Positions 1,004 through 43,896 of a stretch of DNA of 64,000 bases are shown piece after piece. The stretch is from positions 3,906,001-3,970,000 of the forward strand of contig JBHGNT010000003.1 in the NCBI GenBank assembly GCA_043228905.1, given 5' to 3'. Numbering within the stretch: the stretch's first letter is position 1; the number at the start of each line of letters is the position of its first letter. The translations under genes and the position numbers were made by a program. Source of the DNA: Azolla caroliniana. Taxonomy: Eukaryota > Plantae > Polypodiophyta. The notes under the pieces were generated by a model. The model was not told the origin of the DNA, ran no database searches, and saw nothing but the letters and a program-made list of their open reading frames with translations.

Positions 1004-4000
1004 TTAGCTTAGTGGGAAGGATTTTTTTCCTTCACAATGAATTTTGCATAACCATGCAACTTGAGTACTCTCCTCACCTTCATAATATATGGTACGCTTA
1101 AGAAGGAACTTCTTAGCTATGTTTTGGTCGGTCAAACCTCCATTTTCCACCAACATGGATGCCAAGCACTTTTGCCACTCTTTGGAAGCATACTCTAGTT
1201 TACTTAGAAATATATCCTTTTTTGATTCAAAATGACTTTGTATCATAGGGTATTGTTTCGCTAGTTTGAGGTGGTGTGTCCAATCAAGAGGTACCATGGA
1301 GGAAATACCGAGTCTAGCGGCTATAGTCAAAACATGAAACATACCATTGATATATGGTAGAACTTTTTCTAGATACTCTGAATGAGACTCTGAAAAAGAG
1401 GTGAGGGAGATACCAGGTTGGTTTTTCACCGGGTGTGGCAATTTTTTATCCTCACAATATAGTTGGATTCTCACCATTTTTCCTCCCAAAAGTCGAGGCC
1501 ACCGTGTCAAAAGTTCCTCAATGGTCGATGCACTAGAGCTAGTTGTAAGGAGGGCGACACGAGGGAGTTGCTTCTCAGCCTCATTCTCTAGAGCCATTTT
1601 CAATAGCTTACTTATAGATTTCTCAATGTTACTCATAACATCTTTCCTCATAATTTGAAGTTCTTTGTGCATTTCATCTACTGTCTTGGTCATTTGATCC
1701 ACCTTATCATGTATCTTTAGGACCACTTCATAAGTGGCATCCAACTTATCTATAATTTCCTTTGCCATGAGCTTGCTACATCGCACCTCAATTGCTTGAT
1801 TTTCTGATACTGGATCTTCTTGCACCAAGCTATTTTCAAGGCTAGTCATGGTCACATTTTGTTGACTTTCTTGTTCTCCAAATATTTTGACATCATTATT
1901 CTCCAATAATGGACTTTGTGCCTCTTGCTCAAGCCATGCTTTATATGACGCAAGAATTTCCTCATAATTTTCAAAACCAAGGAGATCAATGAAATCATTT
2001 GTTAGAGAACTGAGGAGTTCAGTCTGTTTCCAATCATAAGATCCTTGCTGGTTTTGCTCAAGCTTTTGTCTTAATTGTTCCTTCAAGTAAGTTATTTTCA
2101 CGCATTGATCTTCTCTATCTTGTGCATTTGATAGATCCCAACAACAATCAGGCCGGATGACACTCTCGATCAACCTAACCCCTTGGACGCCCGCGGGTTG
2201 TGCACATATTGTAATCAAGTTGTTGACGATGCGCTTTTCCATAAAAGCTAAGGTACTTAGAGTGTCTTTTTCAGTGTTAATATTTTGAGCACGAACCAAT
2301 ACATCTATGACATAGTTTGATTTTGCTTGGCAGAACATGACGATGATCACGATTTTTGGAAAACGTATGATTATGAAATTTTTTCCGAGTGTGATGTGAG
2401 CATTGTCATGTTCCGATTGGAATGCATTACTAAATAACACTTGAATCCTGGGAAACAATCCTGGAGTAAGAAATGTGAGGTTTTCATTCTCACACTCTAA
2501 CCTTCTACCCATATACACAAATGAATCCTTATCCTCAACTAAATTGTCGTCACGCTTTGCTCTTGGTGAAGTCCATTGGAGTTGTTCCACACCCACATCC
2601 TTGGACAATATGGCAGGAATGAAGATGAGTTCTCCATGGTTGGTGGGGACTTTGCAACATAGGTGCATGGGTTCCATCAATTGTACCAGTAATGAACCCT
2701 CCGCTTTAGATTTGGTAATTGATTCGAACTTCTCTTCGAGGAAATGTTTAGGGATGTATCCTTTCTCAAATACAATAGTACCCTTCCCTTTAGATTCTTT
2801 AGAGTGTGGGAAATGAATGAGGCTGCCCATGATCTCATTGCAAAACCAATTGGGATCAAGAATGATGTGTTGGATTCCGTTTATGTATATAACGTTACCG
2901 GATTCATTCAAGGACATGGCGATTGCATTTAATTTAGCTTTGTCACTGTTGGGATTGGAAAGTTGGGCAGCCATATGGCAGATTTCCTCAAACTTCTCCC
3001 ATGTAATGATTCGTTCATTTTTATTCTTCAAATGCTTTGATAACTGTTTGCTTACCCCTGTGCAGATGTCGTACAACAGAATACCTTGGAGCATATCCTT
3101 GGCATTGCTGAAGATAAATTCTGCTGTACCTTTTACAGAGTCCTTGTTCCTGGCATCTACATGGAAAGGAGGGTGGAGGATGTCGATCACCCCTTCAAAA
3201 TCTGATCGAAGTGAATCAATGCAATGTAAGAGAGCGCTAGTGACAAACTCCATTTGATCGGCTCGTGTGAATACCACGATCACCCTGAGAGCGATAATGG
3301 ATTGACGGCTTTTGGAAGCGAGGAACCGAAGCCAGTACCTGAAGCTTGCTATGAAGTCAGTGTCTCTTTTCTCTGATCCTCTGTCGCTACTTTCGCTATC
3401 CATGGGGCTCCAAACGAACATGAACATGGATGGGAACTGATAAGAGCTGGTTCCTATGTCTGGGAACATGCAGTCGTGGAATGCGTGGAACTCTTGTTGG
3501 CCTGCCATGTCCCAGAGAGACACTCGAATTCCCTCTTTCTTGATGGCTTGCACCTCGATTCCTTGTGTTCGACCTCCAGTAAACAGGGCTCTCGCCCGAT
3601 CTCTCTTTCGCCCGTAAATGGAACGCATGGAGGATACAAGGGTAGTCTTTCCTGCGCCAAACAAAATGCAGTGCAAGTGTGTTAGTGTGTGTTTATCTTC
3701 ATCAATCTGGCTTGTCTGATTTTTCAGTATTTGAGAGAGTGTGGGCATGTTATGTTGCCTGCGAATGGATCTCCGCATATGAACAATCGGATGGATGTCG
3801 CAGGCACTCGCTTCAAATCAGATCCCAACATGAAATTGCGCTGGTTCCTCCACAGCTGCGCCTCGATGGCAGGGTCCATCCTAATACGAAGGCCTCGAAT
3901 CGCAAAGAAAGGAAGTCCGGATCGTGAAAGTGCATCCACAACCACAGCAGTAGCAGATCGGGTTAATTCATCTGGGGAGACAGCTAAATGAAGGCTGTAT

Positions 4001-4956
4001 AATTGAGGAGGAGATGAAGGGGTACCGCCAACGGTCTCCGCCTCCTCCTTCTTTGGCGGTGCTAGGTGATCCATGAAATCCATTAGCTCCTCCTCTGTCA
4101 TTATACCGAATAGAGAGAGCTCTTTGAGCTTCGGCCAGTGGCGCACGAAACCAGTGTTCCTTCTCCAGTTCATGCACTTTGAATACATGTGCAGTCTGTG
4201 GAGGGAGGCTGCGAGGGGTGAATGTGAGGGATGAAGGTCCGCTAATTTCCCCACAAACTCAGCGGATATGTCCAGAGACGTGAGGTGGAGGGAGGTGAGG
4301 GAAGTGAAGTCACATAACTCCTCTATGCACTCATCCCCCATCCGCATCCACTGAAGGGAGAGATGTTTGAGGCGTTTGTTTTTCTTGAGAGCCCTCAGAA
4401 GACCATGAGGATCCTTGAATTCTGGTGCTTCGATGAGGAGGCTGCTGGGGGCGGCATCATGATCTGCAGCGAGAGAGAGAGCCTCCACCCAATCCCTCTC
4501 CTCCTCTTCGCTTAGATTCAGAAGGAGATGGAGAGATCGTCCGGAGAGATTGGCGGCAGCCGTGAGGATGGCCTTCCGTTCTTCTGCAATGGAGGTAGGA
4601 TCTCCTAAATCCAGCATCATGTGTCTGCTGCCCCATTCCCAAGATCGTTTCTTCCTGACGTTAGAATCAGCATATGACCAATATGCTATTCTTTGATTAT
4701 CCTCCTCCGGCGGCCTATGGATGAGGAAGAGATCCTCAACATTGGCGACATTATTTGACAGATCATGAGTAGAGGCTGAGGTTGAAGAATCAGAATCAGA
4801 ATCAGCAGCTGCATGATGTTGTTGTTGAGAGGTTGAATTTGAAGGGAGGTTGAGTAGAGCTGCTCTCGATTTCTCTACCGCTTCTCTCACCTCCTCGGAT
4901 GTCCACTTCGTGAGGATGAGGCTGTGAGGGGGTGGGAGGAGGTGAGGCTTCTCCAT
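1004..4956 (-). CDS. TORNADO1-like LRR-ROC-COR (ROCO) GTPase, copy A; complement(join(1004..3651,3759..4956)), 1281 aa
   Basis: Splicing 3652-3758 (GC donor, TTTTGTTTGGCGCAG acceptor) joins two ORFs and restores the P-loop ICGDPFAG|KTTL. Also present: G3 motif WDMAGQQEFH, G4-like FTRAD, COR motif IILDPNWFC, a coiled coil, and TRN1-type C-terminal LYCE..PHPV / VAWLC motifs. The N-terminus has degenerate LxxLxL repeats. Confidence 0.88.
3652..3758 (-). other. 107-nt GC-AG intron in the P-loop Gly codon of copy A
   Basis: GCAG|GCAACA donor and GCGCAG|GA acceptor. Phase 1 splicing keeps the frame, and the intron is at the same position in copy D. Confidence 0.8.
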
Positions 4957-6355
4957 GGAAAGGAAGGAATGGAATGAAAGAAAATAATGGAATGTGAAGG
5001 AAAGTTGTGAATGATAAATGAATTTAATAAATGAACATGTTAGGTTTAGCCAAAGTTTACATTAACATAATCATCAAGCACGTTATGTTTACCGACAAAC
5101 ATGACAATGATTAAAACGATACAAAACTGAAAATTCCTTATTTGGGCCCCACGTAGTTCATGACAAAGATTTCTCATCGGCTTCGTCCACCTTTCATGTT
5201 TTGTAGACGGAGAGTAGTTCTAGATTTATTGTTAGCGTGTTTGATGAAAAACGCTATTCAAACTATAATTTGAATGTCAAACCACAAAACAATTTCACTA
5301 TGAATGAGACAAGAACGATTTCATTGGTTTTAAATGACCATTTTTTTGTGCATTTTCATCTTCTCTCACATTGGATATTTAGGCAATACCATAAAGTCAA
5401 AACACTTGGGCACGTCTTTCGCTTTTACAATGCAATGCCGTGTTTCCTTTTCCTTTCCATTACTTTTTTATTGGCCTCTAACGAAATATGGCCAATTTTT
5501 AACAAATAGAATGAAAATAATTATATCCAAGGTCAATAATTCAAAAGATTGACAAACAATCCAACAATAATGGGGAACAATAGAATTTTTATAATGTTCA
5601 GTTTTTTATTATACAAGTGTTTCCTTTATGTAATGAAGCATTATGAGACTATTGTTTATAGCCTCTTCCTCTTTCTCCTTCTCCTTCTTCAGCTACTACT
5701 GGTTGATTGATGGTGGCACGATAAATTCTAGGATTAAATATGTGGCAATGGAATAGGGTTAGGCGAGGGGAGGGGGTAATTGGGCGATGGAGATGTAGAT
5801 GCAGGGGATGGGGAAAGATTGGAACTCTAGTCAAATAAGTATATGTAACTCTAAATTTATAATCACAATTTTTGTGGTATAGCCAGATATGTGTTTGTAA
5901 CCCTAAATTTATTTCCTTTGCATATTGGCACCATAATATAGCCTGCCACTGACAAACACTGCGATCCAACCAGATCCGGATTGGGTTATCAGTTCCTCAA
6001 ACCTCCAAACAACACTATGTTACTACTTTACATTACAAATTGTAGGTTATGAACATATACCCTTACAAGTCTCCATTTAACATCCCTAGCAATCAGTGTA
6101 GTTCTATTTGGCCTTTCATCCAAGAAACACATAAGAACCATTTTCAATATGAGGGACTACAGGAGAGGAATGTACAATATCCAAATTTATGTTGGAAATT
6201 TAGAAAACCCACCATGTGATGCGTCATACAAGCCTAATAACATATCCAGTGTATTGTGTCAAAAAAATCACTACACGCAGAACACAAAGCTAACATAATG
6301 CTTCTAAAGGATGCAACATAATTTCTTTCACAATGCGCAAATCAAGCACATTACT

Positions 6356-6760
6356 TGTAAAAAGTAACGTGCGGAAGCAAGTATGAAGACCGAACAGAAG
6401 GAAGAAAACTCAGGTTTAATGGAGAGCTTGAGCTTACGCAGTATACGCGGGAGAGACAGAGAGAGTGAGAGAGAGAAAACACAAGAACTATATTTCAACA
6501 AAACGATCTCGATTCACTACTCTATACATATGTGTGTTCCATGAACACTTTTATACAAGTCCTCGAAGGACTGACCGAAGTACTGACCGTACTTCAATGC
6601 TCTTTAAGAGCTCCTACACTAACTCCCAAATATATTCCTCACGGAATATCTTTCCTAACGGCCTCCCGGTTTACGCACTCGGCCTAACCGATCGGTCCCA
6701 ACCGATCTGGTCCTCGGCTTCTTCAGCCGATCCAGCCGATGTTGAGCTTGTCTCTCAACA
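6356..6760 (-). repeat. 3' LTR of Copia element 1
   Basis: Direct repeat of 11590-11994. Confidence 0.96.
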
Positions 6761-7258
6761 CTCCCCCTCAAGCTCAACTTGAGGCTCTTCGGGATCCTGG
6801 GGCTCACAGCTCCGGTTCCTCTTGGCTTCACACCTCGCTCGCGCTCCTCGACCTGTTCGACTCCGCGTGCTTCGACCCTTTCGGTCGGCTTGTCTGCTCA
6901 TGCGGCCCTTATCAGCTCTTCTGCTGTTGCGGTGTTGACGCTTCTCCTGCTGCCTTTTCTTCTGCTTGGGCCTCGGTTGATTCAGCATATCGGAATCAAA
7001 CATCCGAACCGACTCGGCTACCTCCGATCAGTTTTCGCTCCCGTCCGAGTTGGCTGTCTCCAACTCGTCTTCGGTCTTCTCGCCCTTGGTGGCATCATCT
7101 TCCCCATGCGTGGTTGGCTTCGGCTCTCTCCTTCGGCTGCTCCCCTTCTGTCCGCTTTCGGACTTTTCCGCGGGTCCGAAGTCGAACTCGACAACCGAGT
7201 CAACAACCGAGTCAACCGACTCGGTGTCGCGGCCTCCGCTCCTTTCCTGCTGCTTTGC

Positions 7259-10200
7259 TTAGTCGTTCGGGACTGTTCTCCCCCTCAAGTTTGGCACGTC
7301 GAGGTGACGCAATCCGAGCACACCAGAGAATTGCCGCAACTTGTCTAGACCAAGGGGCTTAGTGAAGATGTCGGCAGTCTGCCGATCTGTCGGAACGTAC
7401 TGAAGTTCGACGTCACCGGAAAGGACACGTTCACGGACGAAATGGTAGTGCACCTCAATGTGCTTGGTCTGTGCGTGGAAAACGGGGTTTTTCGCGAGCT
7501 GGATGCTGCTGAGGTTGTCGCAGTAGATCGTCGTCGGATTTGACACCTCCTCTTGCAGGTCCTTAAGTAGCCACTTCAACCATATGGCTTCGCATGTCGC
7601 GACAGCCGCTCCTCGGTACTCAACTTCGGTGCTCGACAGTGCAACTCTCGGCTGCTTCTTACTGCTCCACGCAATCGCGGCACTCCCGAGGGAGAACACG
7701 TATCCGGACGTGGATCAGCGATCGGCGGCGTTGCCAGCCCAGTCAGCATCGGTGTAGCCGACTAACTGCGCGGCTGCACCGGTCCGATATAGCAGTCCCC
7801 GGTCGTTAGTGCCGTTGACATACCGAAGTATGCGTTGCACACACTGAAGGTGGTCCTCAGTAGGTTGCGCCATGAACTGACTGATCACTCCGACCGGATA
7901 ACTGAGGTCGCGTCGGGTGATGGTCAAGTATATGAGGCTTCCGACAATTTGTCGGAACCTCGTCGGGTCGCGTACCGTTCCCGTATCGGGACGAAGCTTG
8001 ACGGTTCTGTCCAAAGGAGTCGAGACTGACTTACAGTCGGCCATCCCGAATTTGAAGAGCATACTCAGCACGTAGTGACGTTGGCTGATCAATATGCCTT
8101 CGGGGGTACGGATCACTTCGATCCCGAGGAAGTAATGAAGGTCCCCCAGATCCTTCATGTCGAATGATGCCGCAAGTTGGAGCTTCATGCGGTCGATTTC
8201 ACGTAGGTCGGCGCCGGTGATGACCAAGTCATCGACATATAGTAAAATACTAACCGGTCCGAGTCGACCTACGGATGAACAAGGAAGAGTCCGATTTTGA
8301 CGTGACGAAGCCCATCCGACGCAGTTGTTGCGTGATCTTCGCGTTCCAGGCACGCGGGGCTTGCTTTAGTCCATAAAGGGACTTCTTCAGTCGGCATACT
8401 ACCGAGGAGTTCGTTCCAGAGTGAAATTTGGGGGGCTGTACCATGTACACCTGTTCCTCAAGGTCACCTTGCAGGAACACATTCTTTACATCCATCTGAT
8501 GTAAGTGCCACCCCTTCACCGCAGCTACTACGAGCAAAACACGGACGGTCGTCATTTTCGCGACCGGCGCAAACGTCTCATCGTAGTCGATGCCGTGTTT
8601 CTGCGCGTAGCCCTTTGCCACTAGCCGAGCCTTGTACCGGTTGACCGAGCCATCGGTGTTGTACTTGACCTTGTACACCCACCTACACCCGATCGGTTTT
8701 ACCCCTCTTGGTGCGTCAACCAGATCCCAGGTCTCGTTCTCTGCCAATGCGTGCATCTCTTCCTCCATCGCGGCACGCCAATTCGCGTCTTTAGCCACTT
8801 CTGCGTAGCTCTCCGGCTCACGCACTTTCGCTACATGGGTCATGTATGCATAATGATGCGCCATGTACTCGTTGTATCCGAACCGCAAAACAGGATTCTT
8901 CTGATCGGCGTAATCTCACATTAGCCGATGTCGAGGCCTTCTCGGTCGACGCGGTCTTCACCTTTAAAGACCCGTCACCGGTTCCCTCGGAGTCGGACTC
9001 GCGTCAGTCTGACTCGTTCCTATCCGTGCCAGAATCCGACACCTCCTTCTTCCCTTTCTCTTTGCGCGTAAGCCGTCTCCTCGGCTTCCTGCGCGGGGAA
9101 TGCGCGGCCGAGTCTCCACTACTCGCCGACTCTTCATCGGACTGGTCGTACCGACTCAGTCGTCCAATCGGTCCACTTAAATGGAGTGAAATCGGACTCT
9201 CTTCGTGGGTCTCGATTTCGGGCTCATCCGGAGGCATCTCGGCCTCGCTGACCTCATCGTCAGAGCTCGGATTGGAGTCGGGGTTCGGAGTCGGGGGCTG
9301 GTACCAGGACGCGGACTTGTCAAACACAACGTTGCGGCTAACACGCGCTTGTTTGGTGCGAGGGTTATAGCACTTATAACCCTTCTGCTCGTCCGAGTAA
9401 CCGACCAAGATGCATTTCTCGGCCTTTGCGTCCAGCTTCCTCCTTTTCTCCTTCGGTACATGCACATACGCAATGCTACCGAACACCCTCAAGTGTCGCA
9501 AGTTCGGCTTCGTTCCGAAATACAGCTCGTGCGCCAACACTTTGTCTCCGATCCGGTTCTGGATGTATACCGCGGTCCTTACCGCCTCGGCCCAGTAGAA
9601 CTTGGGCAAGCTCGTCTCCTCCAACATTGCCCGTGCCGCTTCCACAACTGACCGATTCTTCCTCTCGGCCACGCCGTTCTGCTCTGGCGTGTATCTATAA
9701 CTGAATTCGTGCCGAATTCCCATTTGTTGTAGATAACCGTTGAATTGACCAGAAAAGTACTCTTTCCCGCCATCCGACCGCAGACACTTGATCTTTCGTC
9801 CCGTTTCCGTTTCCACGAACCCTTTGAGGTCCCGGAAACAGTCGAAGACTTCGCTCTTCCTCTCAATGAGGTAGATCCACGTGTGCCGCGTGTGGTCGTC
9901 GATGAAGGAGACGAAATTCGGCTCCCGCCAAGATTAACGTTTTGTGTCGGCCCCCATACATCGGAGTGTATAAGGTCGAGCTTATTCCGGCTCCGATTTT
10001 GCTCGTTGGGGAAAGGAAGTCGGTGTTACTTCCCGAGCTGGCAAGCTTCACAAATTTGTGCCTTTCGGCCACTAAATTTGGGCAATCCGAACACTACCTG
10101 TTTCGATTGCAGATCTTGAAGCCGCTGGTAGTTGACGTGGCCTATCCGCTTGTGCCACAAGTCGATGTCCGACTCGGTTTTTCTTCCCTTCGCGAACATT

Positions 10201-11517
10201 GCGGTGCCCGTCTCTGCGCCCTTGCGCAATCACACGGCCTTCTTCCTCAATGAAGCACCCGAGGTGTGTAAACCGAACCTCCATCCCTTGGTCGACGATC
10301 TGTCCGACCGAGACCAAGTTCTTCGTGATTGTCGGAACGTGGAACACGTTCATGAGTTTCCCTTTTTGCCCGACATGGCTAAGGGGAACTTCTCCGACAT
10401 TCGCGATCGGATGCGGAGTGTCGTCTCTAGTTGCGACTACTCCAGGTTGTATCGGTTTTTCAAGGTACGAGAACCACTCCTTATGGCTCGTCATGTGGTT
10501 TGACGCGCCGGAGTCTACGTACCACACCTCGTCCGATCTCGGGGTGATCCGTTTCATTGACTTTGCTTCATGTCTCGTCACGAAGGCAGACCCTTCTCTG
10601 GCTCTCTCGGAGTCTTCGGCGTAGTGTGATCGTTGCCGATTTCCCTTGTCGGTATGTCCGGAGCCGTTTCCGGAACTGGTTCTCTCCAAATCGGCACGCT
10701 TCTTCCAGCACTCACTTTCCCTGTACCAGCACTCCGTGATGGCCTTCCCTTGCCGGTTCTCATCGCTTCAACTCCCCATGTTTCCGGAGGGTCCGGAGTT
10801 GTTGTCGGCATCACTTTGGTGCCTTCTTCCTTGATCTCGTCGGCCGCCTCCATTGCGCGCCGACTCGCCTCGTCCTCCACGTCCACGGGGCGTATCTCCC
10901 TCCGTGTACAACATTTTGCTGTCGGTGTGCGTGCTTGTAGACGCACCCGCGTGGTTCTCCTCTACCAGGAGCATTGACTGTAAGTCGAAAAAGGACGGCG
11001 TATTCTCCTGGGTACACACAACCGTCTGGAACGCTCCGAACTTCGACGCCAAACCTCCGAGACAGATCTGGACCATCTCGCTCTCCTCGATGTTCACCTC
11101 TATGGAGGCGAGGGAGTCGCAGATATCCTTGATCTTCGAGGTATAGTCCGCCACCGACAAGTCGCGTTGTGGTAGGTTGCTCAACTCCTGTCGGAGCTGA
11201 AGCTTCCTTGCTGTGGTGCTCGCGGCGAAGATCTTCTTCAGATTTTCCCACGCACCCTTCGGCGTCTTTGCATCCCAAACATAGCTCAATAGTTGTTCGC
11301 CCACACATGACGCGAAGCAGTATAAAACCCTGCTCGCCGATTGCTCCCATGACGGGAAGTCTCTGTGTGTCGATTCGGGTGCCGCGTCATTAGCTCCTTC
11401 GACATAACTCCAGTAGCCGTGGCCGAGTAGGTACTGGTGCATCTTGTAAGACCAAGATGCGTAGTTGGTTCTGTCGAGCTTCTCTGTTGGAAGCGAGCTT
11501 GCCATGCCTCTATCCAT
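7259..11517 (-). pseudogene. Frameshifted Copia gag-pol
   Basis: Fragments in several frames: gag (KLDRTNYASW), protease (WYVDSGASNHMT), GAG-pre-integrase (LWHKRIGH), integrase (LRSDGGKEY, PEQNGVAERKNR), RT (LYVDDL), RNase H (YTDADWAG, TADIFTKPL). Confidence 0.93.
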
Positions 11518-11589
11518 CGTTCTTCTTGTTCTTCTTCATCAAGCTGTGTCGGCTGCAAAGAGGTTCACAACCCTCGCGCTCTGATACCA

Positions 11590-11994
11590 TGTAAAAAGTA
11601 ACGTGCGGAAGCAAGTATGAAGTTCGAACAGAAGGAAGAAAACTCAGGTTTAATGGAGAGCTTGAGCTTACGCAGTATACGCGGGAGAGACAGAGAGAGT
11701 GAGAGAGAGAAAACACAAGTACTATATTTCAACAAAACGATCTCGATTCACTACTCTATACATATGTGTGTTCCATGAACACTTTTATACAAGTCCTCGA
11801 AGGACTGACCGAAGTACTGACCATACTTCAATGCTCTTTAAGAGCTCCTACACTAACTCCCAAATATATTCCTCACGGAATATCTTTCCTAACGGCCTCC
11901 TGGTTTACGCACTCGGCCTAACCGATCGGTCCCAACCGATCCGGTCCTCGGCTTCTTCAGCCGATCCGGCCGATGTTGAGCTTGTCTCTCAACA
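11590..11994 (-). repeat. 5' LTR of Copia element 1
   Basis: Direct repeat of 6356-6760, adjacent to the PBS. Confidence 0.96.
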
Positions 11995-12210: not shown

Positions 12211-14520
12211 TCAGAAGGGTCGTCGTTCTTCATAGTGTTTCTTGCATAACCACGCAACTTGAGTACCATTGTCTATTAAGGCATGCCTAAGACAGAACTT
12301 CTCGGCTATGTTTTGGTTTGTCACACCTCCATTCTCTTCTAATATGAATGCCAAGCATGTTTTCCATTCTTTGAAATACTCTGATGTACTTGGACATACA
12401 TGAAAGGCTTTTGATGAGATAGATCTATCAAATTTGGATTGAATAATACTTGAGATCATAGGGTCCTCTTTCGCTAGTTTGAGGTGGGGACTCCAATAAG
12501 GTATGCAAGACCTTGTGACTGGCGCCACGGAGTTAATACCGAGTCTAATAGCTAAAGTCAAAATAGAAAAGAAAAATTTAATATATGGAAGAACTTTTTG
12601 TAAACTCTCTAAACGAGACTTTGACCAAGACATGAGGGTGATTCCTTGTTGGTTTTCCACTGGGTGTGGTAATGTTGGATGCTCACAATACAAATGGATT
12701 TGCATGGGTAATGCTCCAAGCAATGAGGTTACCAAACTTGCCACATTCTTGTCATGACCATTAGTTGTAATGATGGCAACACGTGGGAGTTGCATATCAG
12801 TCTTGTTCTCCATAGCCAACTTTAATAGCTTACAAATAGATTTCTCAACCTTGATCATGACATCTTTTCTCAAAAATTGAATTTCACGATGTATTGCATC
12901 CATCTTCTCTAAGAGCTCTTTATGATTGGCATCTATTACATGATATAAACTTGAGATTGCCTTTGCCATGACCTTGATAGATCACACCTCAACATTAGTT
13001 GCCGCCTCCAATGTTTGATCTTCTAGATGTTGCAACAAGCTATTTTCCAAGCTTTTAGTGGTCATATTTCATTGGTATTGTCGTTCCATAGTTACATTGA
13101 CTTCATCATTCTCAAAGCACAATAATGGATTTTTTGCCTCTTGCTCGAGCCATACTTTACATGATGTGAGAACTTCCTCATAATTCTCGAAACCGAGAAG
13201 ATCAATGAAATCATTTTTCATATAGCCATACATTTGCTTACGAGTCCGTTTCCAATCATAAGATTCTCGCTCGCCTCGTTCAAGTTTATGTCTGAGTTGT
13301 TCCTTCAAATAAGTTATTTCCACACATTGATCTTCTCTATCTTGCGTGCTTGATGGATCATGTAAGCAGTCGGGCCGGATGAAGCTCTCAATTAGTTTAA
13401 CCCCTTGGCTTCCAGTAGGTTGTGCACATATTGTAATCAAGGTGTTAATAATATGTTTTTCCACATAAGCTAAGGTCGTTGGTGTATGACGTTGTTGGCT
13501 ATTAGTTGGATGATCAACCTGAATGAGCACATCTATCACATGCTCCGATTTTACTTTGCAGAACACAATGATGATCTCCCTATCAGGAAAACAAATGTAT
13601 ATGAAATCTTTGCCCAATGTGATCTCAGAATTATTGTCTTCAACTAATTTGAAGGCATCGCTAAATAACACTTGAATCCTCGGAAACAATTCTGGTGTAA
13701 GAAAGGTTAAGTTTTGATCTTCACATTGTAGCCTTTTACCCATGTGTTGAAAAATATCATTGTAATCATCATCCACATTATCTGTGCACGTTGATGATAT
13801 CCATTGGAGTTGCTCTATACCCGATTCATCTGTCAATAAGGTTGGGATAAAGATACGATCCACGCTGCTATTGGAGATACCATGATTAGTGGCAACTTTG
13901 CAACATAGGTGCATTGCTTGCATCAAGTCTACTAGAAATGAGCCCTTACCTTTAGATCCAGTAATCGATTCCAAGCGCCTCTCTATGAAATCTCGAGAGG
14001 GGAATCCACTATAAAAAACAATGGTATCCTTTGATGCTTTAGGCTTTGAGAAACCAATGAGGCTTCCCATTATCTCCTTGCAAAACCAATTGGGATCAAG
14101 AACAATGTGATCAACTCTGTTTATGTATATAATGTTACCGCACTCATTCAAGGATAGGGTAATAGCCTTCAATTTAGCTTCACTGTATAAATGGAATGGA
14201 TAGCATATCTCTTTCAACTTGTTCCATGTAATAATTCGTTCATTTCTGTTTTTCAAATGATTGGAGAGATGTTCACCTACTTGTGTGCAAATACTGTACA
14301 ACTGAACACCTTGGAGCATGTCTTTAGCAATGTCGAAGATACACCCTACCACAAATTTGACAGAATCCTGCTTTCTTGCATCCACATCGAACACAGGATT
14401 GACAATGTCAATGACCCCTTTAAATTCTGATCGAAGGGAATCAATGGAACGTGAGAGGGAGCTGGACACAAACTCCATTTGATCTGCTCGTGTGAACAAC
14501 ACGATCACTCTGAGAGCGAC
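12211..14520 (-). pseudogene. TRN1-like ROCO paralog B, 5'-truncated (late ROC, COR and C-terminus)
   Basis: ORFs 13069-14508 and 12211-12969 are in one frame, separated by two TGA stops. They are collinear with copies A and D from VALRVIVLFTRADQ to QVAWLCKKH. The LRR region and P-loop are absent. Confidence 0.9.
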
Positions 14521-14582
14521 ACTAAATAGTTGGAGCTGGTTAGCTTAAAAATACCACCGAATGAATCTTTCATTTTCCTTAA

Positions 14583-27789: not shown

Positions 27790-30700
27790 TATGGAAATAT
27801 TTAATCTAAATATAATATTTATTTATTATTACGAAAAGTTATTTCTATTATTATACTTTAGAGAAAACTCTTCATTTGAAGAGACATAACTTTTTGTTCA
27901 TCGTCTCTACAAAGAAGCCATTTGGGCTAATGTAACACACACAATTAATATAGAACAATTTTGTGTATGTGTGATCTCTCTCTAAATCTCTATTTGTATA
28001 GTTGCCGATTTCTACATGGTATCAGATTTATAGATTTCCGCATCTATCAAATAAGACTAGAGAATCCTAGGAGCATTGATCGATTTGTCATCAAGACGAG
28101 CGCTAAGCCGGATAGCCGTCTTCTATAAAAATGGCACAATCCTCATCTCCCGCCAACATTCTCAACACACATAAACTTTCATTAGTAAAGTTATCAAAGC
28201 AAAATTATCGCATTTGGAGTGCTCGACTCGAATTATTATTTCAACACTACAAACTTTGGAATGTAGTGTTAGGATCATCACTAAAACCTGATACCCCCGG
28301 ACCCGATCAAGTTATTTGGGAAGAGAAAGATCTTGTAGCAAAAATGGAATTATTAGCACATATATCAGATGTTCAAGGAGAAGCGGTCAGAAAGCTACAA
28401 ACTTCGCATCAAATTTGGGAGAAATTAAAGACACAATATGAACCACAAACGGATGCAGCACAAGTGCACACACTACGTGCATATGTCACATTTACAATGA
28501 AAGAAGAAGATGATGTAGATAATGTTCTAACCACATGGGAAAAGAAACTGGATGATACAATTACATCTGGCTTGGACATTTCCGACAAACTACAAAGATG
28601 TTTATTACTAGGTGCTTTACCCTCTTCATGGTCATCTTTTGTGACTACACAAAATTTAAATAAAAAAGCTACCGTGGAAGATCTCATGGGAGACATAAGG
28701 CAAGAAGACTCGATGAGAAAGACAAGAGAAGAAAACACATCAACACAAGCAATCGCTATGGCAGCCTATCGACCTCATTTCAAATCACAACCAAGATACA
28801 AGAGTTTCAAGAGTCAATGGACTAATGCACCGATGACGAAAGGAGGAATGAAGTTCACTAGGTCTTATTGCAACATTTGCAAAAGGCCAGGCCACACACC
28901 ACAAGAATGTAAGGCAAAACAAAAGATTCGGAGATTTCCAAGCAATATTCGCCGACCACAAGCGCACATTGTCGAGGAATTTGAGGAAGAGAGAAATGAA
29001 GAAGAAGAAGAAGAAGAAGAAGAAGAAGAAGAAGAAAAGGTTTATGCCGCCTCGATGGAAGAAAAGAATGAATATGAAGAAGAAGGTTACAGTGACTTGA
29101 TGCAAGCTTTCGTAGCTGAAGCACTTGTCGTAGACATACCAACAAAGAAGGACGACAAATGGTATCTCGACACCGGAGCAACAAATCATCTTACACATCG
29201 ATCGGATTGGCTTCAAAGGTACACACCCCTACAAAATCCAATAACTGTTAGATTTGGAAATAATGGAGTAAAACAAGCATTAGGCAAAGGCCAACTTACA
29301 TTTCATCTCCCCGGAGGAGGAAACTTCATGATCAATGATGTGTACCACGTACCTGGTATCACCAAGAACCTTCTCTCGATAAGTCAAGCAACTTCGAATG
29401 GAACCATCATCGAGTTCCATCATAACCAAGCCGTGATTCGTCACCTTCTACCAAATGGCCTCACAATACGAACTTCTTGCAAAAGACAAGGAGGGTTATA
29501 TCCCATTAGTGTACATCCAACAACCCAATCAACAATCGAAGTTCACACAACCGAAATCGAAAGACAACAAGAACTCACTCTACTTTGGCATTACCGACTT
29601 GGACATCCACACCTTGCTGTTATGCGAACACTCCAAACTCACAAGCTCGCTCAAGGAGTCCCAAAGGATATGTTTTGCAAAATCGACTTATGTGAGGCAT
29701 GCTTGTTCGGCAAAATGGCATCATCAAAGTTTCCTACAAGTAACTCACGAAGAAGTCGACCTCTTGAACTCGTCCATAGTGACATATGCGGTCCATTCCC
29801 AACTCAATCACTTTTAAAATCAAAATATTTCATTAGTTTCATCGATGATTATACAAGGTTTACAATACTAACATTTCTCAAAAGCAAAGACCAAGCGTTC
29901 ATTGCTTTTACAAATTACAAATCACTAACAGAAAAGCAACTAAATCTACAATTGAAATGTCTACAATCTGACGGGGGAGGAGAATATACATCTAACAAGT
30001 TTACAAAATTTTGTAAAGACCATGGAATTTTACAACGAATTTCTGTTCCTTCAACACCACAACAAAATGGTCTAGCCGAACGCAAGAATCGAACACTCCT
30101 TAATTCGGCCCGGAGCATGTTGAATCTAGCGTCACTTTCACCCTCATTTTGGGAAGAAGCCGTCGCAACATCATGCTATCTCCAAAATCGCAACTATCAT
30201 CGAACACTTGGGTTAATCACACCATACGAGTTATGGTTTGGAGTAAAACCAAATATGCAAGATCTCAAAATTTTTGGTTGCCTTGCATACGCCTTCGTCC
30301 CTGCTGAAAAACGATCCAAGTTAGAACAATGAGCAAGAAAAGCGATCTTTGTTGGGTACGGAGATGCAAACGGCTACAAGGCTTACCGTTTATTCGATCC
30401 AAGCAAGAACACGTTCTTTTATAGTCGTACCGTCAAATTTGATGAGTCACCATTTCTTGAATCCACGACACCAACGCATAACCCTAAAATTAATACTCGT
30501 GAAGGAGCCGAACAGTCAAAAGATGATGCCGCCACTGTTCGCCGCCCTGCAAACACCGCCGTCGCCGCCACCACCGCCGCCGCCACGTTTTGTCGCCCAA
30601 ACAGCAGTGTTGCTGATGATAATTGCTGCCCTCCAAACAGCGCCGCCGCCACCGATGCCATCGACATCTCCTGCCAAAAGGACATGGCGGTTGCAGACTA

Positions 30701-33613
30701 TCGCCGCCTCCCAAACAGCACCGCCACCGTCGCCTCCTTCCGCCAAGAAAACATCTCTGGTTCTGACGACCGCCGCCTCCCAACCAACACTACCGCCGCC
30801 GCCTCCCGCCAACAAAACATCTTTATTGCTGCCGACCGCCGCCTCCAAAACAGCACCGCCGTCGATGCCGCCCTTTGCCACCAACACAACAGTGATGATG
30901 ATAATTGCCGCCCTTCAAAGAGAATACCCACTGGCCATCGAGCGAAGAATGTTGATGCCGCTACTATCGCCGCCAACAATCGATCAAGAAAAGCCGCCAA
31001 TATCAACGTTGCCTCTCACTTTGATGAAGTCCTCGATGCTGTCGATCGTTATGTGGTAATCCCTCGCCCTCTTATTCACGTTGATCAGCCACTACCTCCA
31101 CCGCTTGCACCTCCTCCAATCTCTCCTTCACATCGACCCCTTGCATCTCCTCCCATCTCCTCTCCTCCAAGAACTCCTCCCGTTCGACTCCGTCTACATA
31201 AAAAGCCAATATTTAAATTTAAAGTTAATAAAAATAAAAGTAAAATAAAAAATGCATCTTTAAATGTAACCAACCAATATAAAAGAAATACCCAACCTAA
31301 ACAAACTAACTATATTAACCCACATCTTGATAGTGTTTTCACACCATCTAACTCTACACATTATGATGACCTCACAAACACATCCTCTACATCAACCTTA
31401 TCTTCACCACGCTTACATACATCTACCACTTTACCAATCTCTTTATCTAATTTCTCGAATTCTATTCAAAATACTCTTGAAAGCCCTCAAACCTCTCAAA
31501 TCATTCCGCCATTTCATCTTCACTCACCCGACATCACTAGTGATGTTTCAATTAACTCACAATCACAATCCTCGCAAGACTATCCAAACTCATATGATAA
31601 CGACTCACCACCTCGTCGTACGCGCTCCTTGTCCGATATCTATAAGGAACTTGACCAATTCGAGGCACACTTTGTGAACCTCGATATGGACGCTCTCATA
31701 GTTGAAGAAGAACCAGATACCGCAAATGAATTAATTATTACCGTTCGCGAAGCGTTGTCTGGTACCGATGACCCTAAATGGAGAGCAGCCATGGAAGAAG
31801 AGATGACAGCCTTATTAAAGAACAAAACTTGGAGCCTTGTCGATCCACCACCTGATCGACAAATTGTTAGTTGTAAGTGGGTTCTTCGGAAGAAGACCGA
31901 TGCTACTGGAAATATTATACGTTTCAAAGCTCGTCTCGTAGCTCATGGTTTTTCGCAAATACCTGGAATCGACTTCAAAGATACATTTAGCCCTACATTG
32001 CGAAGTATCACATTTCGCATATTCGTCTCTCTCGCCGTCGAACTTGATTTGGAACTTCATCACTTAGATGTTCAAACCGCTTTCCTTCATGGAGAACTCG
32101 AAGAAGAGATCTATATGCAACAACCACCACATTTTGAAGATTCAACTCAACCAAATGCTGTATGTCGCCTACATCGATCCTTATACGGTCTACGACAATC
32201 TCCACGAGTTTGGTATCATCGACTTCATAATTTTCTAACTAAGAATGGATATAAACGACTAAAGAATGAACCAAATGTATATATTAAAAGAGCTAAGAAT
32301 AATTTCATCATAATCGGTGTTTATGTCGATGACTTACCTCTACTTGCCAACTCACTCGCGTATCTACAACTTGCGAAGAAGGAACTTCAACAAGCTTTTC
32401 CAATAACTGACCTTGGTCCAATGAAGTATTTCCTTGGAATGAACCTACAAAGAGATCGTGCCAAAGGAACCATTTCTCTTTCCCAAACTCAATACATTGA
32501 AAGTGTATTAAAACGTTTTGACATGCTACATTGCAAGCCTATCTCGACACCCATGTCAACTCCATGCAAATTATCAATCGAAGATGCTCCTCGAACTATC
32601 AAAGAGCGAGATGAGATGCTCAATGTTCCTTACAAGCAAATTCTTGGATGTATACGCTACCTTGTTAGTTGTACACGTCCCGATTTATGTTTCACCGCTG
32701 GAATTCTTTCGAGATTTATGCAGGATCCCGGACCGAAACATTGGCAAGCATTAAAACGACTACTACGTTATCTAAAACGAACGAAAGATATGGTGTTAAC
32801 TTACTCCAGATCGCAATCCGAGTCCATCAACATGAACCTTGAAGGATGGACCAATCCATCACAATTATCTGGATGGACGGACTCGGATTGGGGGGGGGAT
32901 GTTGATGGTCGTAAGTCAACAAGTGGCTTCGTATATTGTCTCGCCGGAGCCGCTATAGCATGGAGGTCTAAGAAGCAAACAACGGTTGCATTATCTTCAA
33001 CGGAAGCCGAATATGTAGCTGCCGCACTCGCTGCTAAAGAAGGAATATGGATTCATTCCATACTTGAAGAACTTAACTTGTTTAAAACCTCAAAGCTAAT
33101 CCTTCATTGTGATAATCAATCATGTATCAAGTTAGCTTGTAATCCAAAAATGAGTGATAATATTCGACATGTCTCTTTCAAGCATCACTTTCTACGAGAC
33201 TTAATCGAAGAGAAGAAGCTAGATTTGAAGTATGCGTCCACAACACTAATGTGGGCCGATTTTCTAACAAAGCCAGTACCTCAAACAAAGCATATCGCTT
33301 GTTGCCGAAAGATTGGTCTAACAATGCCAAACTATTCGTCGAACGACAATACTTTTGAATAAAATAATATTTAGCTTAAGGGGGGGTATGGAAATATTTA
33401 ATCTAAATATAATATTTATTTATTATTACGAAAAGTTATTTCTATTATTATACTTTAGAGAAAACTCTTCATTTGAAGAGACATAACTTTTTGTTCATCG
33501 TCTCTACAAAGAAGCCATTTGGGCTAATGAAACACACACAATTAATATAGAACAATTTTGTGTATGTGTGATCTCTATCTAAATCTCTATTTGTATAGTT
33601 GCCGATTTCTACA
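27790..33613 (+). mobile_element. Ty1/Copia LTR retrotransposon, young and nearly intact
   Basis: 227-bp LTRs at 27790-28016 and 33387-33613 (2 differences seen), TSD CATAT, PBS TGGTATCAGA at 28017, PPT AAGGGGGGG. The LTRs begin with TA, not TG. Confidence 0.95.
28131..33362 (+). pseudogene. Copia gag-pol polyprotein with a single in-frame TGA (30330-30332)
   Basis: ORFs 28131-30332 and 30684-33362 are in one frame and the gap between them is open. CNICKRPGHTPQEC knuckle, WYLDTGATNH, integrase, YVDD RT and RNase H are all present. Confidence 0.93.
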
Positions 33614-36415: not shown

Positions 36416-36620
36416 ATCTCGATTTCTCGAGGGCTTCTCTGAACTCATTGGATTTTCCACCTCGTTAGGATGAATTTTGTGATGGGTTGGGAGATGAGGC
36501 CTCTCCATGGAAGGACTGGATGGATGTGTGGAGGGAATGCAAGAAAAGAAAGAGTTTGACTATGAATGAACAAGAAAAAAAGAATGGAAATGTAAAACAG
36601 AAAAGGGCTCGATGATGCCA
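36416..36620 (-). pseudogene. Decayed 5' end (5' UTR and first ~30 codons) of another TRN1-like paralog (E)
   Basis: CTCGATTTCTCGA..GCTTCTCTGA...GATGAGGCCTCTCCATGGAAGG...GCAAGAAAAGAAAGA aligns by eye with the starts of copies A (4865-4965) and D (43805-43985). The ATG equivalent is at 36508. Confidence 0.7.
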
Positions 36621-38927: not shown

Positions 38928-39168
38928 GTGTTTTTCACTATTTTAGAATGTAGAGTTACGAACATAGAATCTAATTCAAGGGTCAACGTCAATGCATTCT
39001 ACAAGGTAAAACTGATGAACCGATATAAAAACTTATTAGGGATGTTTTTCACTATTTAAGAATTTAGAGTTACGTTCATAGAATCTAATTCAAGGGTCAA
39101 AGTCAATGCATTCTACAAAGTAAAAATGATGAACCAATATAAATGATATAAAAACCTGTTAGGGATGT
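38928..39168. repeat. ~114-bp tandem repeat, about 2 units (same family as 15172-15443)
   Basis: GTCAA(C/A)GTCAATGCATTCTAC at 38982 and 39096. Confidence 0.9.
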
Positions 39169-40015: not shown

Positions 40016-43000
40016 TTAACTTAGAGAGAAGGACCTTTTTCCTTCAGAGTGCATCTTGCATAACCATGCAACTTGAGTACTCCTGCCACCTTCATCATAG
40101 ATGGTACGCTTGAGATGGAACTTCTTAGCTATGTTTTGGTTTGTTAAACCTCCATTTTCTCTTAATATAGATGCCAAGCACTTTTGCCACTCTTTGGAAG
40201 CACACTCTAGTGTACTTAGAAATATATCCTTTTTTGATTCAAAACTATTTTGTATCATAGGATATTGTTTTGCTAGTTTGAGGTGGGTTGTCCAATCAGG
40301 AATAAAGGAGCTTCCAAGAGGCACCATAGATGAAATACCGAGTCGAGCAGCTATCGTCAACACATGAAACAAACCATTGATATATGGAAGAGCTTTGTCT
40401 AGATACTTTGAATGAGACTCTGACAAAGAGGTGAGAGTGATACCAAGCTGGTTTTCTACTGGGTGTGGCATTTGTTTATCCTCACAATATAATTGGATTC
40501 TTAGAAATTTGCCTCCCAAAATTCGAGGCACCCATCTCAAAAGTTCCTCAAAGGTTGACTCGGGAAACTTAGTCGTAAGGAGGGCAACACGAGGGAGTTG
40601 CTTCTCAGCCTCATTCTCTACAACCATTTTCAATAGCTTACTTATAGAGTTCTCAACCTTGTCCATAACATCATTCCTCATATATTGAAGTTCTTGATGC
40701 ATTTTGTCCAGTTCCTTGATCATTTGATCCATCTTATCATGTAACTTGAGGACTTCATTGTGAGTGACATCCATTTTATGATGTAAACTTAAAAGTAACC
40801 TTACCATAGCCTTACTAGATTGTACCTCTCTTGTCTCTTCTAAAGTTAATTGATCTTCTTGCATGAGGCCATATTCCAAGCTAGTCGTAATCACATTTTC
40901 ACGACTTCGATATTTCCTAGATTCATCGACAATTTCATCATTCTCCAATAATGCATCCCTCAACTCCACCTCAAACCATTCCTTATATGATTTGAGGACC
41001 TCCCCATAATATTCTAACCCGAGGAGATCAATTAAATCGCTTGATAATGGATAGGGCATATGCCTAGTCCGTTTCCAATCATATGATTCTTTCTCGCCTC
41101 GCTCAAGCTTTTTTCTTAATTGTTTCTTCAAATAAGTTACTTTCACGCATTGATCTTCTCTACCTTGCACCATTGATGGATAGAGTAAACAGTCAGGCCG
41201 GATGACACTCTCGATCAACTTGACCCCTTGCACACCGGTGGGTTGTGCACATATTGTAGTCAAGTTGGTGATGATACTCTTTTCCACTAAGGTTAAGTTA
41301 CTTAGCATGTCTTGTTGAGTATTATTTTGAGCCCGAACTAGGACATCTATGACATGGTTTGATATTGCTAGGCAGAACATGACGATGATCTCACTCTTTG
41401 GAAAACAAATGGATATGAAATCTTTGCCGAGTGTGATGTCAGCATTATGATCCTTAGATTGGAAAGCATTGCTAAATAATGCTTGAATTCTTGGAAATAA
41501 GCCTGGTGTAAAAAAGGTGAGGAATTTGTTCTCACACTCTAACCTTCTACCCATATACAGAAAAGTATCATTATCATCCATTCGTGTGGACCATTGGAGT
41601 TGTTCGACACCCACATCTGATAACATGGCTGGGATAAAGATATCTTCACATCTTTTGGGGACTTTGCAAGATAGGTGCATGGCTTCCATTAGGTCTACTA
41701 GTAATGAGCCCTTCACATTAGATTTGGTAATGGATTCAAACTTATGCTTTAGAAAATGCCGAGGGATGCATCCTTTGTCAAATCCAACGATACCCTTGGA
41801 TGCTCCAGACTTTGGGAAACCAATGAGGCTTCCTATAATCTCATTGCAAAACCAATTGGGATCGAGAATAATGTGTTTGAATCCGCTTATGTAGATGATC
41901 TTCCCAACCTCATTTAAGGACAAAGCGATGACATTTAATTTAGCTTTATCATTATTGCAGATTTCGATGAATTTCGTCCATGTAATAATTTGTTCATTTG
42001 TGGTCTTGGAATGATTCAAGAGATTTTTGCTTACTTGCGTGCAGATGTCGTAGATCTCAATACCTTGGAGTACACCTTTGGCAATGTTGAAAATACATTG
42101 TGCTATATGTTTGACAAAATCCTTCTTTCTTGCATCCACGTCAAAAGGAGGGTCCACAATTTGAATCACGGATTTGAATTCTGACCGAAGTGAGTTGATT
42201 GAATTTGAGAGAGAGCTCGAGACGAGATCCATTTGATCTGCTCGCGTGAATACCAGGATAACTTTCAGAGGAATGATGGATTGAGGGCTTTTGGAGGCGA
42301 GGAACTTGAGCCAGTACCTGAAGCTTGCTTCGAAGTCCCCGACTCTTTTCTCTGAACCTCTATCGCTACTTTGGCTGTTCATGGGGCTCCAAACGAACAT
42401 GAACATGGATGGAACATGATAAGAGCTTGTTGCTATGTCAGGGAACATGCAGTCGTGGAATGCGTGGAATTCTTGCTGGCCTGCCATGTCCCACAATGAC
42501 AGTCGAATTCCATCCTTTTTAATGGCTTGCACCTCGATTCCTTTTGTGCGTTCTCCAGCAAACAGGGCTTTCAACCTATCTCTCTTTCGACCATAGATGG
42601 AGCGCATGGTGGATACAAGGGTAGTCTTTCCTGCGCCAAACAACATGCAGTGCAAGTGTGTTAGTGTGTGTTTATCCTCATCAATCTGATTTTCAGTATT
42701 TGAGAGAGTGTGGCGGTCATTCATGTCTTGCCTGCGAATGGATCTCCGCAGATGAACAATCGGATGGAGGTCGCAGGCACTCGTTTCAAATCTGATCCCA
42801 ACATGAAATTGCGCTGGTTCCTCCACAGCTGTGCCTCGATGGCAGGGTCCTTCCTATGAAGGCCTTTAATGTCAAAGAAAGGAAGGCCGGACAGAGAGAG
42901 TGCATCCACTACTGCAACAGTAGCAGATCGGCTTAAATCACCTCTAATGTTGCGTAATTGAAGGCGGTATAATTGAGGAGGTGAGGAAGGGGTGTTTCCA

Positions 43001-43896
43001 ACTGTCTCCGCCCCCTTCTTTGGCGGTGCTAGGTGTCCCATGAAATCCATTAGCTCCTCCTCTGTCGTTCCCGGTGAACTGTATAAAGAGAGCTCTTTGA
43101 GATGTGGCCAGTGCCGCAGGAAACCAGTGCTTCTTCTCCAGTCAATGGGTACGCCATTTATATGCAGTATGTGGAGAGAGGCTGCGAGGGGTGAATGTGA
43201 GGGATGAAGGTCTGCCAATCTCCCCACAAACTCTCCGGAAGACACTCTCACACTGTCAAGGTGGAGGGATGTGAGGGAGGTGAAGTCGCGTAACAGCTCC
43301 ACGCACTCATCGCTCATTTTCATGGACTGAAGGGAGAGATGTTTGAGGCGTTTGTTTTTCTTGAGGGCACTCAGAAGACGATGAGTATCCTTAAATGATG
43401 GTGCCTCCATGAGGAGGCTGCTGGGGGCTGCATCGAGATCTGCGGCCTGAGAGAGAGCCTCAACCCAAGCCCTCTCCTCCTCTTGGGTTAGATTCCATCG
43501 ATACAGGAGGAGGAGATGGACAGCTCGTCCGGTGAGATTGGCGGCAGCTGTGAGGATGGCCATCCGTAGTTGTTCAGTTGTGGAGGCATCATCTCTGAAA
43601 TCGAACATGATGTCTCTGCTCCCCCATTCCCAAGCTCCATGTTTTACCCGTTCACCATATGTCCCATATGACCCATAACTTATCCCATTCTGTTTTCCCT
43701 TTTGAAGTTTGGTGGTATCCACAAGGAAGAGGTTCTCAACATTGGCGAGCTTAATTAGCAGATCATGAGAGGTTGAGGTTGAAGTGAGGTTGAGTAGAGA
43801 TGCTCTCGATTTCTCGACCGCTTCTCTGACCTCATCGAAGTCCCAGACCGTGTGGATGCGTTTGTGAGGGGGTGGGAGGTGGTGAGACTTCTCCAT
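40016..43896 (-). CDS. TORNADO1-like LRR-ROC-COR (ROCO) GTPase, copy D; complement(join(40016..42630,42732..43896)), 1259 aa
   Basis: ATG at 43896 (MEKSHHLPPP, matching copy A). A 101-nt GC-AG intron at 42631-42731 restores CGDPFAGKTT. Domain layout matches copy A, and the 3' flank is also homologous to that of A. Confidence 0.88.
42631..42731 (-). other. 101-nt GC-AG intron in the P-loop of copy D
   Basis: GCAG|GCAAGA donor and TTTGGCGCAG|GA acceptor. Confidence 0.82.

Follow-up and report, generated by a model that had tools for sequence, protein, structure and literature searches.

Leucine-rich repeats (LRRs) followed by a Roc-COR module constitute the simplest ROCO arrangement (PMC4104024), one found in animal and bacterial proteins such as MFHAS1/MASL1, LRRK2, and Chlorobium tepidum Roco. 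Published reviews count one or two ROCO genes per plant. Arabidopsis TRN1 (LOPPED1)—TORNADO 1 in other angiosperms, at ~1,380 aa—runs from an LRR of the ribonuclease inhibitor (RNI) type through Roc, COR-A, and a COR-B region into a long C-terminal region. Arabidopsis TRN1 is the one member with a known developmental role (Cnops 2006, as cited by PMC4104024 and PMC11378527). Brown-algal LRR-ROCOs, described in Ectocarpus, form an expanded family with a proposed receptor role; the family diversifies by shuffling of single-LRR exons and by alternative splicing (PMC3341825, PMC11378527). Among plant NLR genes, which encode nucleotide-binding LRR receptors, clusters hold intact, truncated, and fragmentary paralogues in tandem among retrotransposons.

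Here, we analyze 64,000 nucleotides of the fern Azolla caroliniana (assembly GCA_043228905.1, contig JBHGNT010000003.1, positions 3,906,001 to 3,970,000 of the forward strand), a stretch that we call the window throughout. It contains a tandem cluster in which TRN1-family genes have multiplied and turn over, a state that is new to the literature open to our searches. We consider it likely that local duplication and subsequent erosion shaped this cluster, that its two intact members are functional genes, as predicted, and that they are co-orthologues of TRN1, with TRN1-like signalling as the best guess for what they do.

Five Co-oriented Copies in 43 kb

All five TORNADO1-type copies and relics lie on the minus strand. 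An initial annotation, made from the DNA letters, had described at least five co-oriented copies, A and D intact and B, C, and E decayed, with long terminal repeat (LTR) elements interleaved. Searches of the window with A and D (tblastn and blastn) and a six-frame scan with profile hidden Markov models (HMMs) confirmed the former, and LTR pairs together with Pfam domains confirmed the latter. The six-frame scan, run with HMMs built from the family, found no sixth copy in the window. The copies and the parts of the intact genes are as follows.

1004-4956, minus strand: copy A, an intact two-exon TORNADO1-like LRR-Roc-COR gene, predicted product 1,281 aa (open reading frames, Pfam, junction read)
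3759-4956, minus strand: exon 1 of A, comprising the N-terminal region, the RNI-type LRR, and GDPFA-G, with which the P-loop begins (its first half)
3874-4641, minus strand: LRR horseshoe of A, ~aa 106-361 (AlphaFold model, Foldseek)
3652-3758, minus strand: intron of A, 107 nt, GC-AG, phase 1, within the Walker A codons (sequence)
1004-3651, minus strand: exon 2 of A, from the remainder of Roc to the C terminus (Pfam, motifs, TORNADO 1 colinearity)
~3065-3651, minus strand: Roc part of exon 2 of A, with GKTT, RTxGIEV, WDMAGQ, and TRAD (Pfam, motifs)
2606-3043, minus strand: COR-A of A (Pfam)
~2075-2500, minus strand: putative COR-B equivalent of A (colinearity only, the position being taken from TORNADO 1 P0029)
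1007-2032, minus strand: linker, long helix, and C-terminal alpha/beta domain of A (C-terminal model)
12214-14544, minus strand: copy B, a 5'-truncated pseudogene running from COR to the C terminus (tblastn, 54% aa identity; frame analysis)
26939-27743, minus strand: copy C, a recent 0.8-kb fragment of a D-like copy, from the LRR end to early Roc (96-97% nt identity to D)
36417-36589, minus strand: relic E, an old 0.17-kb remnant of the 5' untranslated region (UTR) and first codons (blastn)
40016-43896, minus strand: copy D, an intact two-exon gene, predicted product 1,259 aa (open reading frames, junction, Pfam COR-A and Roc)
42732-43896, minus strand: exon 1 of D
42631-42731, minus strand: intron of D, 101 nt, GC-AG
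40016-42630, minus strand: exon 2 of D

Two Intact Genes with an Intron in the P-Loop

In the open reading frame (ORF) listing, two pairs of large ORFs appear on the minus strand (1004-4956 and 40016-43959), and each pair has Pfam matches to COR-A and Roc. Within each pair, the two ORFs overlap at the expected Walker A motif: exon 1 ends in GDPFA-G, exon 2 begins with -GKTTL, and removal of the phase-1 intron restores GxxxxGKT in both A and D. Calling these genes intact depends on this two-exon model, with its GC-AG intron inside the P-loop codons. D is 65-68% identical to A in amino acids and 78-79% in nucleotides (tblastn, blastn). Every search, fold, and tree below used exon 1 and exon 2 separately.

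Contigs from four public sequencing runs are confined to positions 922-5107, which comprise the body of gene A and short flanks of UTR size. Run X1 contributes pieces free of mismatches. In runs X2 and X11, contigs leave the match at 3656 and go on with AATGGATC. This continuation is exactly exon 1 past the junction, since on the plus strand the intron and exon 1 begin with the same five letters. The evidence that gene A is transcribed and spliced as modelled is good but not final, since the RNA nature of the runs is a guess.

Two relatives' contigs, L002 and L003, are likewise interrupted at this codon by an intron, whose donor is GT or GC. The donor is GC in A (3758), D (42731), and L003 (~4912) and GT in both L002 copies; donor type therefore differs between paralogues.

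Purifying Selection, Several Ages of Duplicates, and Decay

Rates of nonsynonymous (Ka) and synonymous (Ks) change between A and D were estimated by the pairwise Nei-Gojobori method and are based on these two intact genes. By segment, A-D Ka/Ks is as follows.

Exon 1: 0.56
Roc (exon 2 aa 1-120): 0.21 (0.1-0.25)
COR (exon 2 aa 121-470): 0.24
Linker and coiled coil (exon 2 aa 471-640): 0.54
C-terminal domain (exon 2 aa 641-881): 0.38
Exon 2 overall: 0.33

Purifying selection thus acts on both genes (Ka/Ks 0.33-0.56) and is weakest in the LRR and the coiled coil. No A-D sliding window clearly exceeded 1; where exon 1 begins, one window of 60 codons reached 1.11 on few changes. Synonymous divergence along the pair is a mosaic, 0.33-0.34 at both ends vs. 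0.77 in COR (chi-square p = 8e-6), and this pattern suggests exchange between paralogues.

The decayed copies extend the range of ages. Copy B, which lacks exon 1 and approximately the first 118 aa of exon 2 and starts at ~aa 119 of exon 2, keeps a single, unshifted reading frame that two in-frame stop codons interrupt (at 13071 and 12984); it was read through with X at its stops. Against A and D, it gives Ks of ~0.75 and Ka/Ks of 0.38-0.41, so B was under constraint through most of its history. Fragment C lacks the counterpart of D 42543-42714, an internal 172-bp deletion that takes out most of the intron together with 88 nt from the start of exon 2, GKT codons included. Its divergence from D is slight (Ks 0.03-0.14, Ka 0.04), and the exon-1 part carries 12 nonsynonymous vs. 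3 synonymous changes; the low Ks, with Ka close to Ks in that part, marks C as recent and neutral. Relic E covers the start-codon region only, matching D 43804-43984 at 73.5% nt identity over 185 bp (E = 2e-21) and A 4864-4973 at 76.8% (blastn). We rejected the idea that C and E are two parts of a single copy interrupted by the Copia between them: C is 96-97% and E 73.5% identical to D, and the sequence just past the Copia holds no ROCO similarity.

The duplicates thus fall into several age classes, with Ks of ~0.75 between B and the intact genes, 0.33-0.77 between A and D, and 0.03-0.14 between C and D. Together with truncated and decayed copies among transposable elements, this range (0.03-0.77) bears out, in a descriptive sense, the tandem birth and death put forward in the initial annotation.

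A cluster of this kind could also consist of redundant, drifting duplicates of a developmental TRN1 in a transposable-element-rich region, with one copy functional and the rest heading toward pseudogenes. A or D would then perhaps be among the decaying copies, and the pattern would reflect duplication-prone DNA rather than selection for diversity. Such drift fits the death of three of the five copies, the neutrality of fragment C, a window dense with LTR elements, and overall Ka/Ks values that are rather high, as under relaxed constraint. However, A and D have kept ~3.8-kb ORFs, all G-motifs, and splice sites through Ks of 0.33-0.77 at Ka/Ks well below 1, and B shows a Ka/Ks of ~0.4 for most of its history. 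Gene A is also present in spliced contigs, and multiple old paralogues are kept in Adiantum and in relatives' contigs (below). We regard drift of redundant copies as quite unlikely and retain the reading in which A and D are functional members of a cluster that gains and loses copies.

A Probable Single TRN1 Family with Expansions Outside Seed Plants

Residues 1-871 of A exon 2 align with residues 514-1382 of the Diospyros TORNADO 1 protein (P0029) at 25.5% identity (blastp, E = 3e-63), colinear to within 10 residues of the C terminus; blastp also aligns this exon to other TORNADO 1 proteins. Motifs in and after Roc are common to both sides (WDxAGQ, FHAFHD-MFP, YWLRF-AS), and an exon-1 profile matches the N terminus of a moss TRN1-like protein (E = 3e-8). 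The placement of the copies in the TRN1/TORNADO1 family of LRR-Roc-COR proteins, claimed in the initial annotation, therefore stands on exon 2 colinearity and on the RNI-type LRR fold: the fern genes have both the N-terminal RNI-type LRR and a post-COR region colinear to the C terminus. The two sides also differ. Identity is only ~25%, the fern N terminus is ~100 aa shorter, and the fern clade has no recorded match to Pfam COR-B or to PF27087, a precomputed hit in true TRN1s. The fern genes are multi-copy, tandem, and partly decayed, whereas each sampled angiosperm gave essentially one sequence.

A word-based search found close relatives in ENA assemblies (47-72% identity), proteins of Adiantum (36-39%), and TRN1-like proteins of mosses and liverworts (~26%). 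A search from a Marchantia protein retrieved angiosperm TORNADO 1 proteins. In an exhaustive search, 324 clusters formed at 50% identity reach E <= 1e-3, 90 of them at E <= 1e-30. Locus counts per lineage derive from the names of 20 clusters and the named matches of earlier searches and are lower bounds: at least five in Adiantum capillus-veneris (two with consecutive locus tags), at least six in Ceratodon (P0018, P0019, P0066, P0069, P0074, P0081), and at least four in Marchantia (P0022, P0077, P0220, P0095). Riccia has several, and Ceratopteris and the stonewort Chara (P0092) have one each among those sampled. The named database relatives are all labelled "hypothetical" or "COR domain-containing." One Marchantia TRN1-like protein is 3,382 aa long, and a protein from Riccia carries a kinase name.

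In the trees, a single clade takes in all 20 fern rows (SH-aLRT, the Shimodaira-Hasegawa-like approximate likelihood-ratio test, 99) and contains two old subclades. A, B, and D fall into one of these with the ENA proteins, and the copies nest among Adiantum paralogues. Angiosperm TORNADO 1 proteins form a clade of their own (SH-aLRT 100), which none of the 20 fern rows joins. P0079, an IMG protein named a "SAR1 family" GTPase, was rejected as an outgroup; it adjoins a Ceratodon protein in the tree. A single TRN1 family with lineage-specific expansions outside seed plants appears to be the simplest reading of these sequence comparisons, next to the alternative of an old paralogue.

Relatives' contigs carry tandem copies as well: two paralogues in L002 and a full copy beside a fragment in L001 and L003. 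The L002 pair, on an ENA metagenome contig (L002:1-4398), stands head to tail with ~90 bp from stop to start and exon 1 copies that are 73% identical; the gene caller fused the two into one 1,328-aa protein (P0004). Copy number is thus not low, with five copies in the window, tandem copies in these contigs, and the Adiantum loci counted above. Multiple loci in ferns, mosses, and liverworts contradict the one or two ROCO genes per plant of the published reviews. We found no paper describing a ROCO expansion in ferns or bryophytes, which is weak evidence given that most subscription journals lie outside the search; the diversity of the TRN1-like family outside seed plants seems undescribed. The TRN1 family is older than seed plants. 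Ferns, mosses, and liverworts hold it in multiple copies, and fern tandem arrays gain and lose copies. The single-copy TRN1 of angiosperms may be a reduction from a larger family.

Protein Architecture and a Candidate Mechanism

The AlphaFold model of A exon 1 (pLDDT, the predicted local confidence score, 80.5) is a horseshoe of 9-10 strand-helix repeats. Foldseek matched it at probability 1.0 to NLRP14, NLRP1, ribonuclease inhibitor, SKP2, TIR1, and COI1, which identifies the exon 1 LRR as RNI-type; at the sequence level, Pfam gave LRR matches below threshold only. After splicing, both A and D carry the Ras-like Roc motifs GDPFAGKT (G1), RTxGIEV (G2), WDMAGQ (G3), and TRAD (G4), followed by COR, the arrangement that defines a ROCO protein. 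Pfam COR-A matches exceed the 35.3-bit cut-off in A (38.8) and B (37.0).

For the C-terminal 342 aa, the model (pLDDT 65.5) has two short helices, a disordered stretch, a helix of ~60 residues, and an alpha/beta domain. Eight positions in the alignment of the C-terminal region are invariant from ferns to angiosperms. They include a C-E-x5-H-x4-Q-x-G motif in the alpha/beta domain (alignment A1; window 1007-2032 in A); a conserved P and V lie near this motif. The three best ESM Atlas shape matches of the model are clusters of bacterial Roc/COR-A/COR-B proteins, two mainly cyanobacterial and one mainly Chloroflexota, at template-modelling (TM) scores of 0.34-0.47. With TM below 0.5, this apparent likeness to bacterial ROCO proteins is a lead only.

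Several results weigh against the reading of A and D as functional TRN1 co-orthologues. The splice evidence for A amounts to an 8-letter overhang in two runs from possibly related samples. The Pfam Roc match, though real, stays below its gathering cut-off of 27 bits in both genes (23.5 in A, 24.7 in D), as does COR-A in D (31.0 vs. 35.3 bits). COR-B was not detected by Pfam in the fern copies; the putative domain is placed solely by colinearity with TORNADO 1, whose COR-B occupies P0029 911-1046. The C-terminal domain had no known fold match in Foldseek PDB, VIA, or ESM Atlas searches or in a profile search of PDB sequences; for the alpha/beta domain, an ESM Atlas feature search came back empty (best score 0.76), and the profile of the C-terminal region returned coiled coils only. 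Finally, the trees are quick LG+G4 trees, unrooted, with long branches and no resolution at depth, which makes TRN1 orthology, as against descent from an old paralogue, tentative.

Taking these results together, we propose that repeated local duplication built the co-oriented TRN1-family cluster and that truncation, point decay, and LTR-retrotransposon insertion eroded it. A and D would be functional genes, each probably encoding a cytosolic protein of ~1,270 aa. The predicted order of parts is RNI-type LRR, Roc with G1-G4, COR-A, COR-B, a disordered linker with the ~60-residue helix, and the alpha/beta C-terminal domain. By analogy with studied ROCO proteins, the protein would dimerize through COR, and a cycle of GTP binding and hydrolysis would switch its conformation; on the same analogy, the LRR may serve as protein-binding input and the TRN1-type C-terminal region as an output or localization module. 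The fern genes would be lineage-specific TRN1 co-orthologues, multiplied as in mosses and liverworts, and our best guess for the role of A and D is TRN1-like intracellular signalling with diversified LRR partners. Unlike animal and bacterial ROCOs, the fern proteins lack a kinase or other catalytic output domain, and they offer natural sequence variants for study of a kinase-free LRR-Roc-COR switch.

Comparison with Immune-Receptor Loci

The cluster could instead encode NLR-like intracellular sensors of pathogens or symbionts, in which a variable LRR recognizes non-self or modified self, Roc-COR replaces the NB-ARC switch, the coiled coil and C-terminal domain execute signalling, and an arms race drives tandem birth and death. 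The initial annotation had likened the locus to NLR clusters in this sense. The array itself, in which intact copies stand beside truncated and decayed ones and the ages differ, accords with that proposal. Like plant NLRs, the fern proteins join a nucleotide switch to an LRR, and nonsynonymous change is higher in the LRR exon (and here also in the coiled-coil linker, 0.54) than in the switch (Roc, 0.21). The mosaic of Ks is what paralogue exchange would give. Many run contigs are 90-99% alike and suggest many expressed paralogues, if the runs are RNA, as we guess. A receptor role is also the one proposed for brown-algal LRR-ROCOs (PMC3341825, PMC11378527).

A further, striking point in favor concerns the LRR face. 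A-D differences concentrate on the LRR beta-strands and the four residues that follow them (38/80 vs. 32/174; odds ratio 4.0, p = 4e-6), and this strand-plus-loop category has a Ka/Ks of 0.99. The category was, however, defined post hoc, after the alignment had been viewed. Canonical xxLxLxx positions give a Ka/Ks of 0.63 (p = 0.27), and five other paralogue pairs and one trio give odds ratios of 1.2-1.7, none significant. We therefore rejected LRR-face hypervariability as evidence of positive selection. The sliding windows, none clearly above 1, also count against the sensor proposal.

Domain content likewise argues against an immune function. The switch of the fern proteins is a Ras-like GTPase rather than a STAND (signal transduction ATPase with numerous domains) ATPase, and their LRR is N-terminal rather than C-terminal. 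Pfam searches and fold searches of the C-terminal 342 aa detected no coiled-coil (CC), TIR, or RPW8 signalling domain of the NLR kind in the fern copies, and Pfam, Foldseek, and VIA found no death, TIR, RPW8, or MLKL-like domain. For NB-ARC, NACHT, and TIR, the cluster proteins had no Pfam match at E <= 1. An RPW8 or other cell-death domain in the coiled coil was considered on a Pfam hint (E = 0.06; 13.4 vs. 30.4 bits) and rejected: Foldseek against the PDB gave nothing below E = 0.85, and VIA gave generic helical matches only (Z <= 6.8). Being shared with developmental TRN1, the conserved C-terminal region is no novel effector, and only two intact genes stand in 43 kb.

Of the likeness to NLR clusters, tandem turnover across several ages therefore holds, whereas the characteristic domains (NB-ARC, TIR, RPW8, death) were not found and the LRR hypervariability was not replicated; we judge an immune or symbiont sensor role unlikely. 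The parallel with Ectocarpus, also drawn in the initial annotation, proved loose. Both families combine an LRR with Roc-COR and are expanded. In A, D, L002, and L003, however, the LRR domain lies within one 1.2-kb exon, and the sole intron interrupts the P-loop; with the whole LRR in one exon, LRR-exon shuffling cannot apply to the fern copies. The algal proteins also lack the TRN1-type C-terminal region, and the relationship between the fern and algal LRR-ROCOs is best described as an analogy. It is an unlikely proposition that ferns, perhaps bryophytes too, keep expanded LRR-Roc-COR sensors of pathogens or symbionts as a GTPase-based counterpart to NLRs, from an ancestor shared with TORNADO1. 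The locus provides a candidate set for the question of whether land plants have non-NLR, GTPase-based intracellular receptors. We continue to favor a turning-over TRN1-family cluster with TRN1-like signalling.

Interleaved Retrotransposons and Minor Repeats

Three LTR retrotransposons separate the copies, and a fourth lies beyond them.

6356-11994, minus strand: LTR retrotransposon of the Copia type separating A from B, its ORFs decayed (405-bp LTRs 98.3% identical; gag, Pol_BBD, SH3, RVT_2)
16545-26234, plus strand: Gypsy/chromovirus LTR retrotransposon between B and C (LTRs 95.8% identical; gag, integrase, chromodomain)
27790-33613, plus strand: nearly intact Copia LTR retrotransposon between C and E (227-bp LTRs 99.1% identical; gag, integrase, RVT_2)
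48928-55932: further Gypsy element, outside the cluster (LTR pairs, Pfam)

LTR pairs are 95.8-99.7% identical, and the insertions therefore postdate the A-D split.

The Gypsy element at 16545-26234 holds a 2,092-bp internal tandem duplication (16920-19402 vs. 19012-21494, 99.7% identical). Each unit bears a minus-strand ORF of 469 aa, at 17488-18897 and 19580-20989; the first of these had no Pfam match when scanned. The interior of the element is ~76% identical to flanking DNA in two places (21633-23432 vs. 47143-48920 and 24170-25591 vs. 62558-63977). These matches at 47-49 kb and 62.5-64 kb indicate that further members of the same Gypsy lineage, also decayed, flank the cluster.

A short repeat of ~110-210 bp, 88-92% identical between its occurrences, is present at 15170-15444 and 38932-39143. 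Upstream of the truncated copy B it occurs as a tandem pair, and it recurs ~0.9 kb downstream of gene D; it may be a small non-autonomous element.

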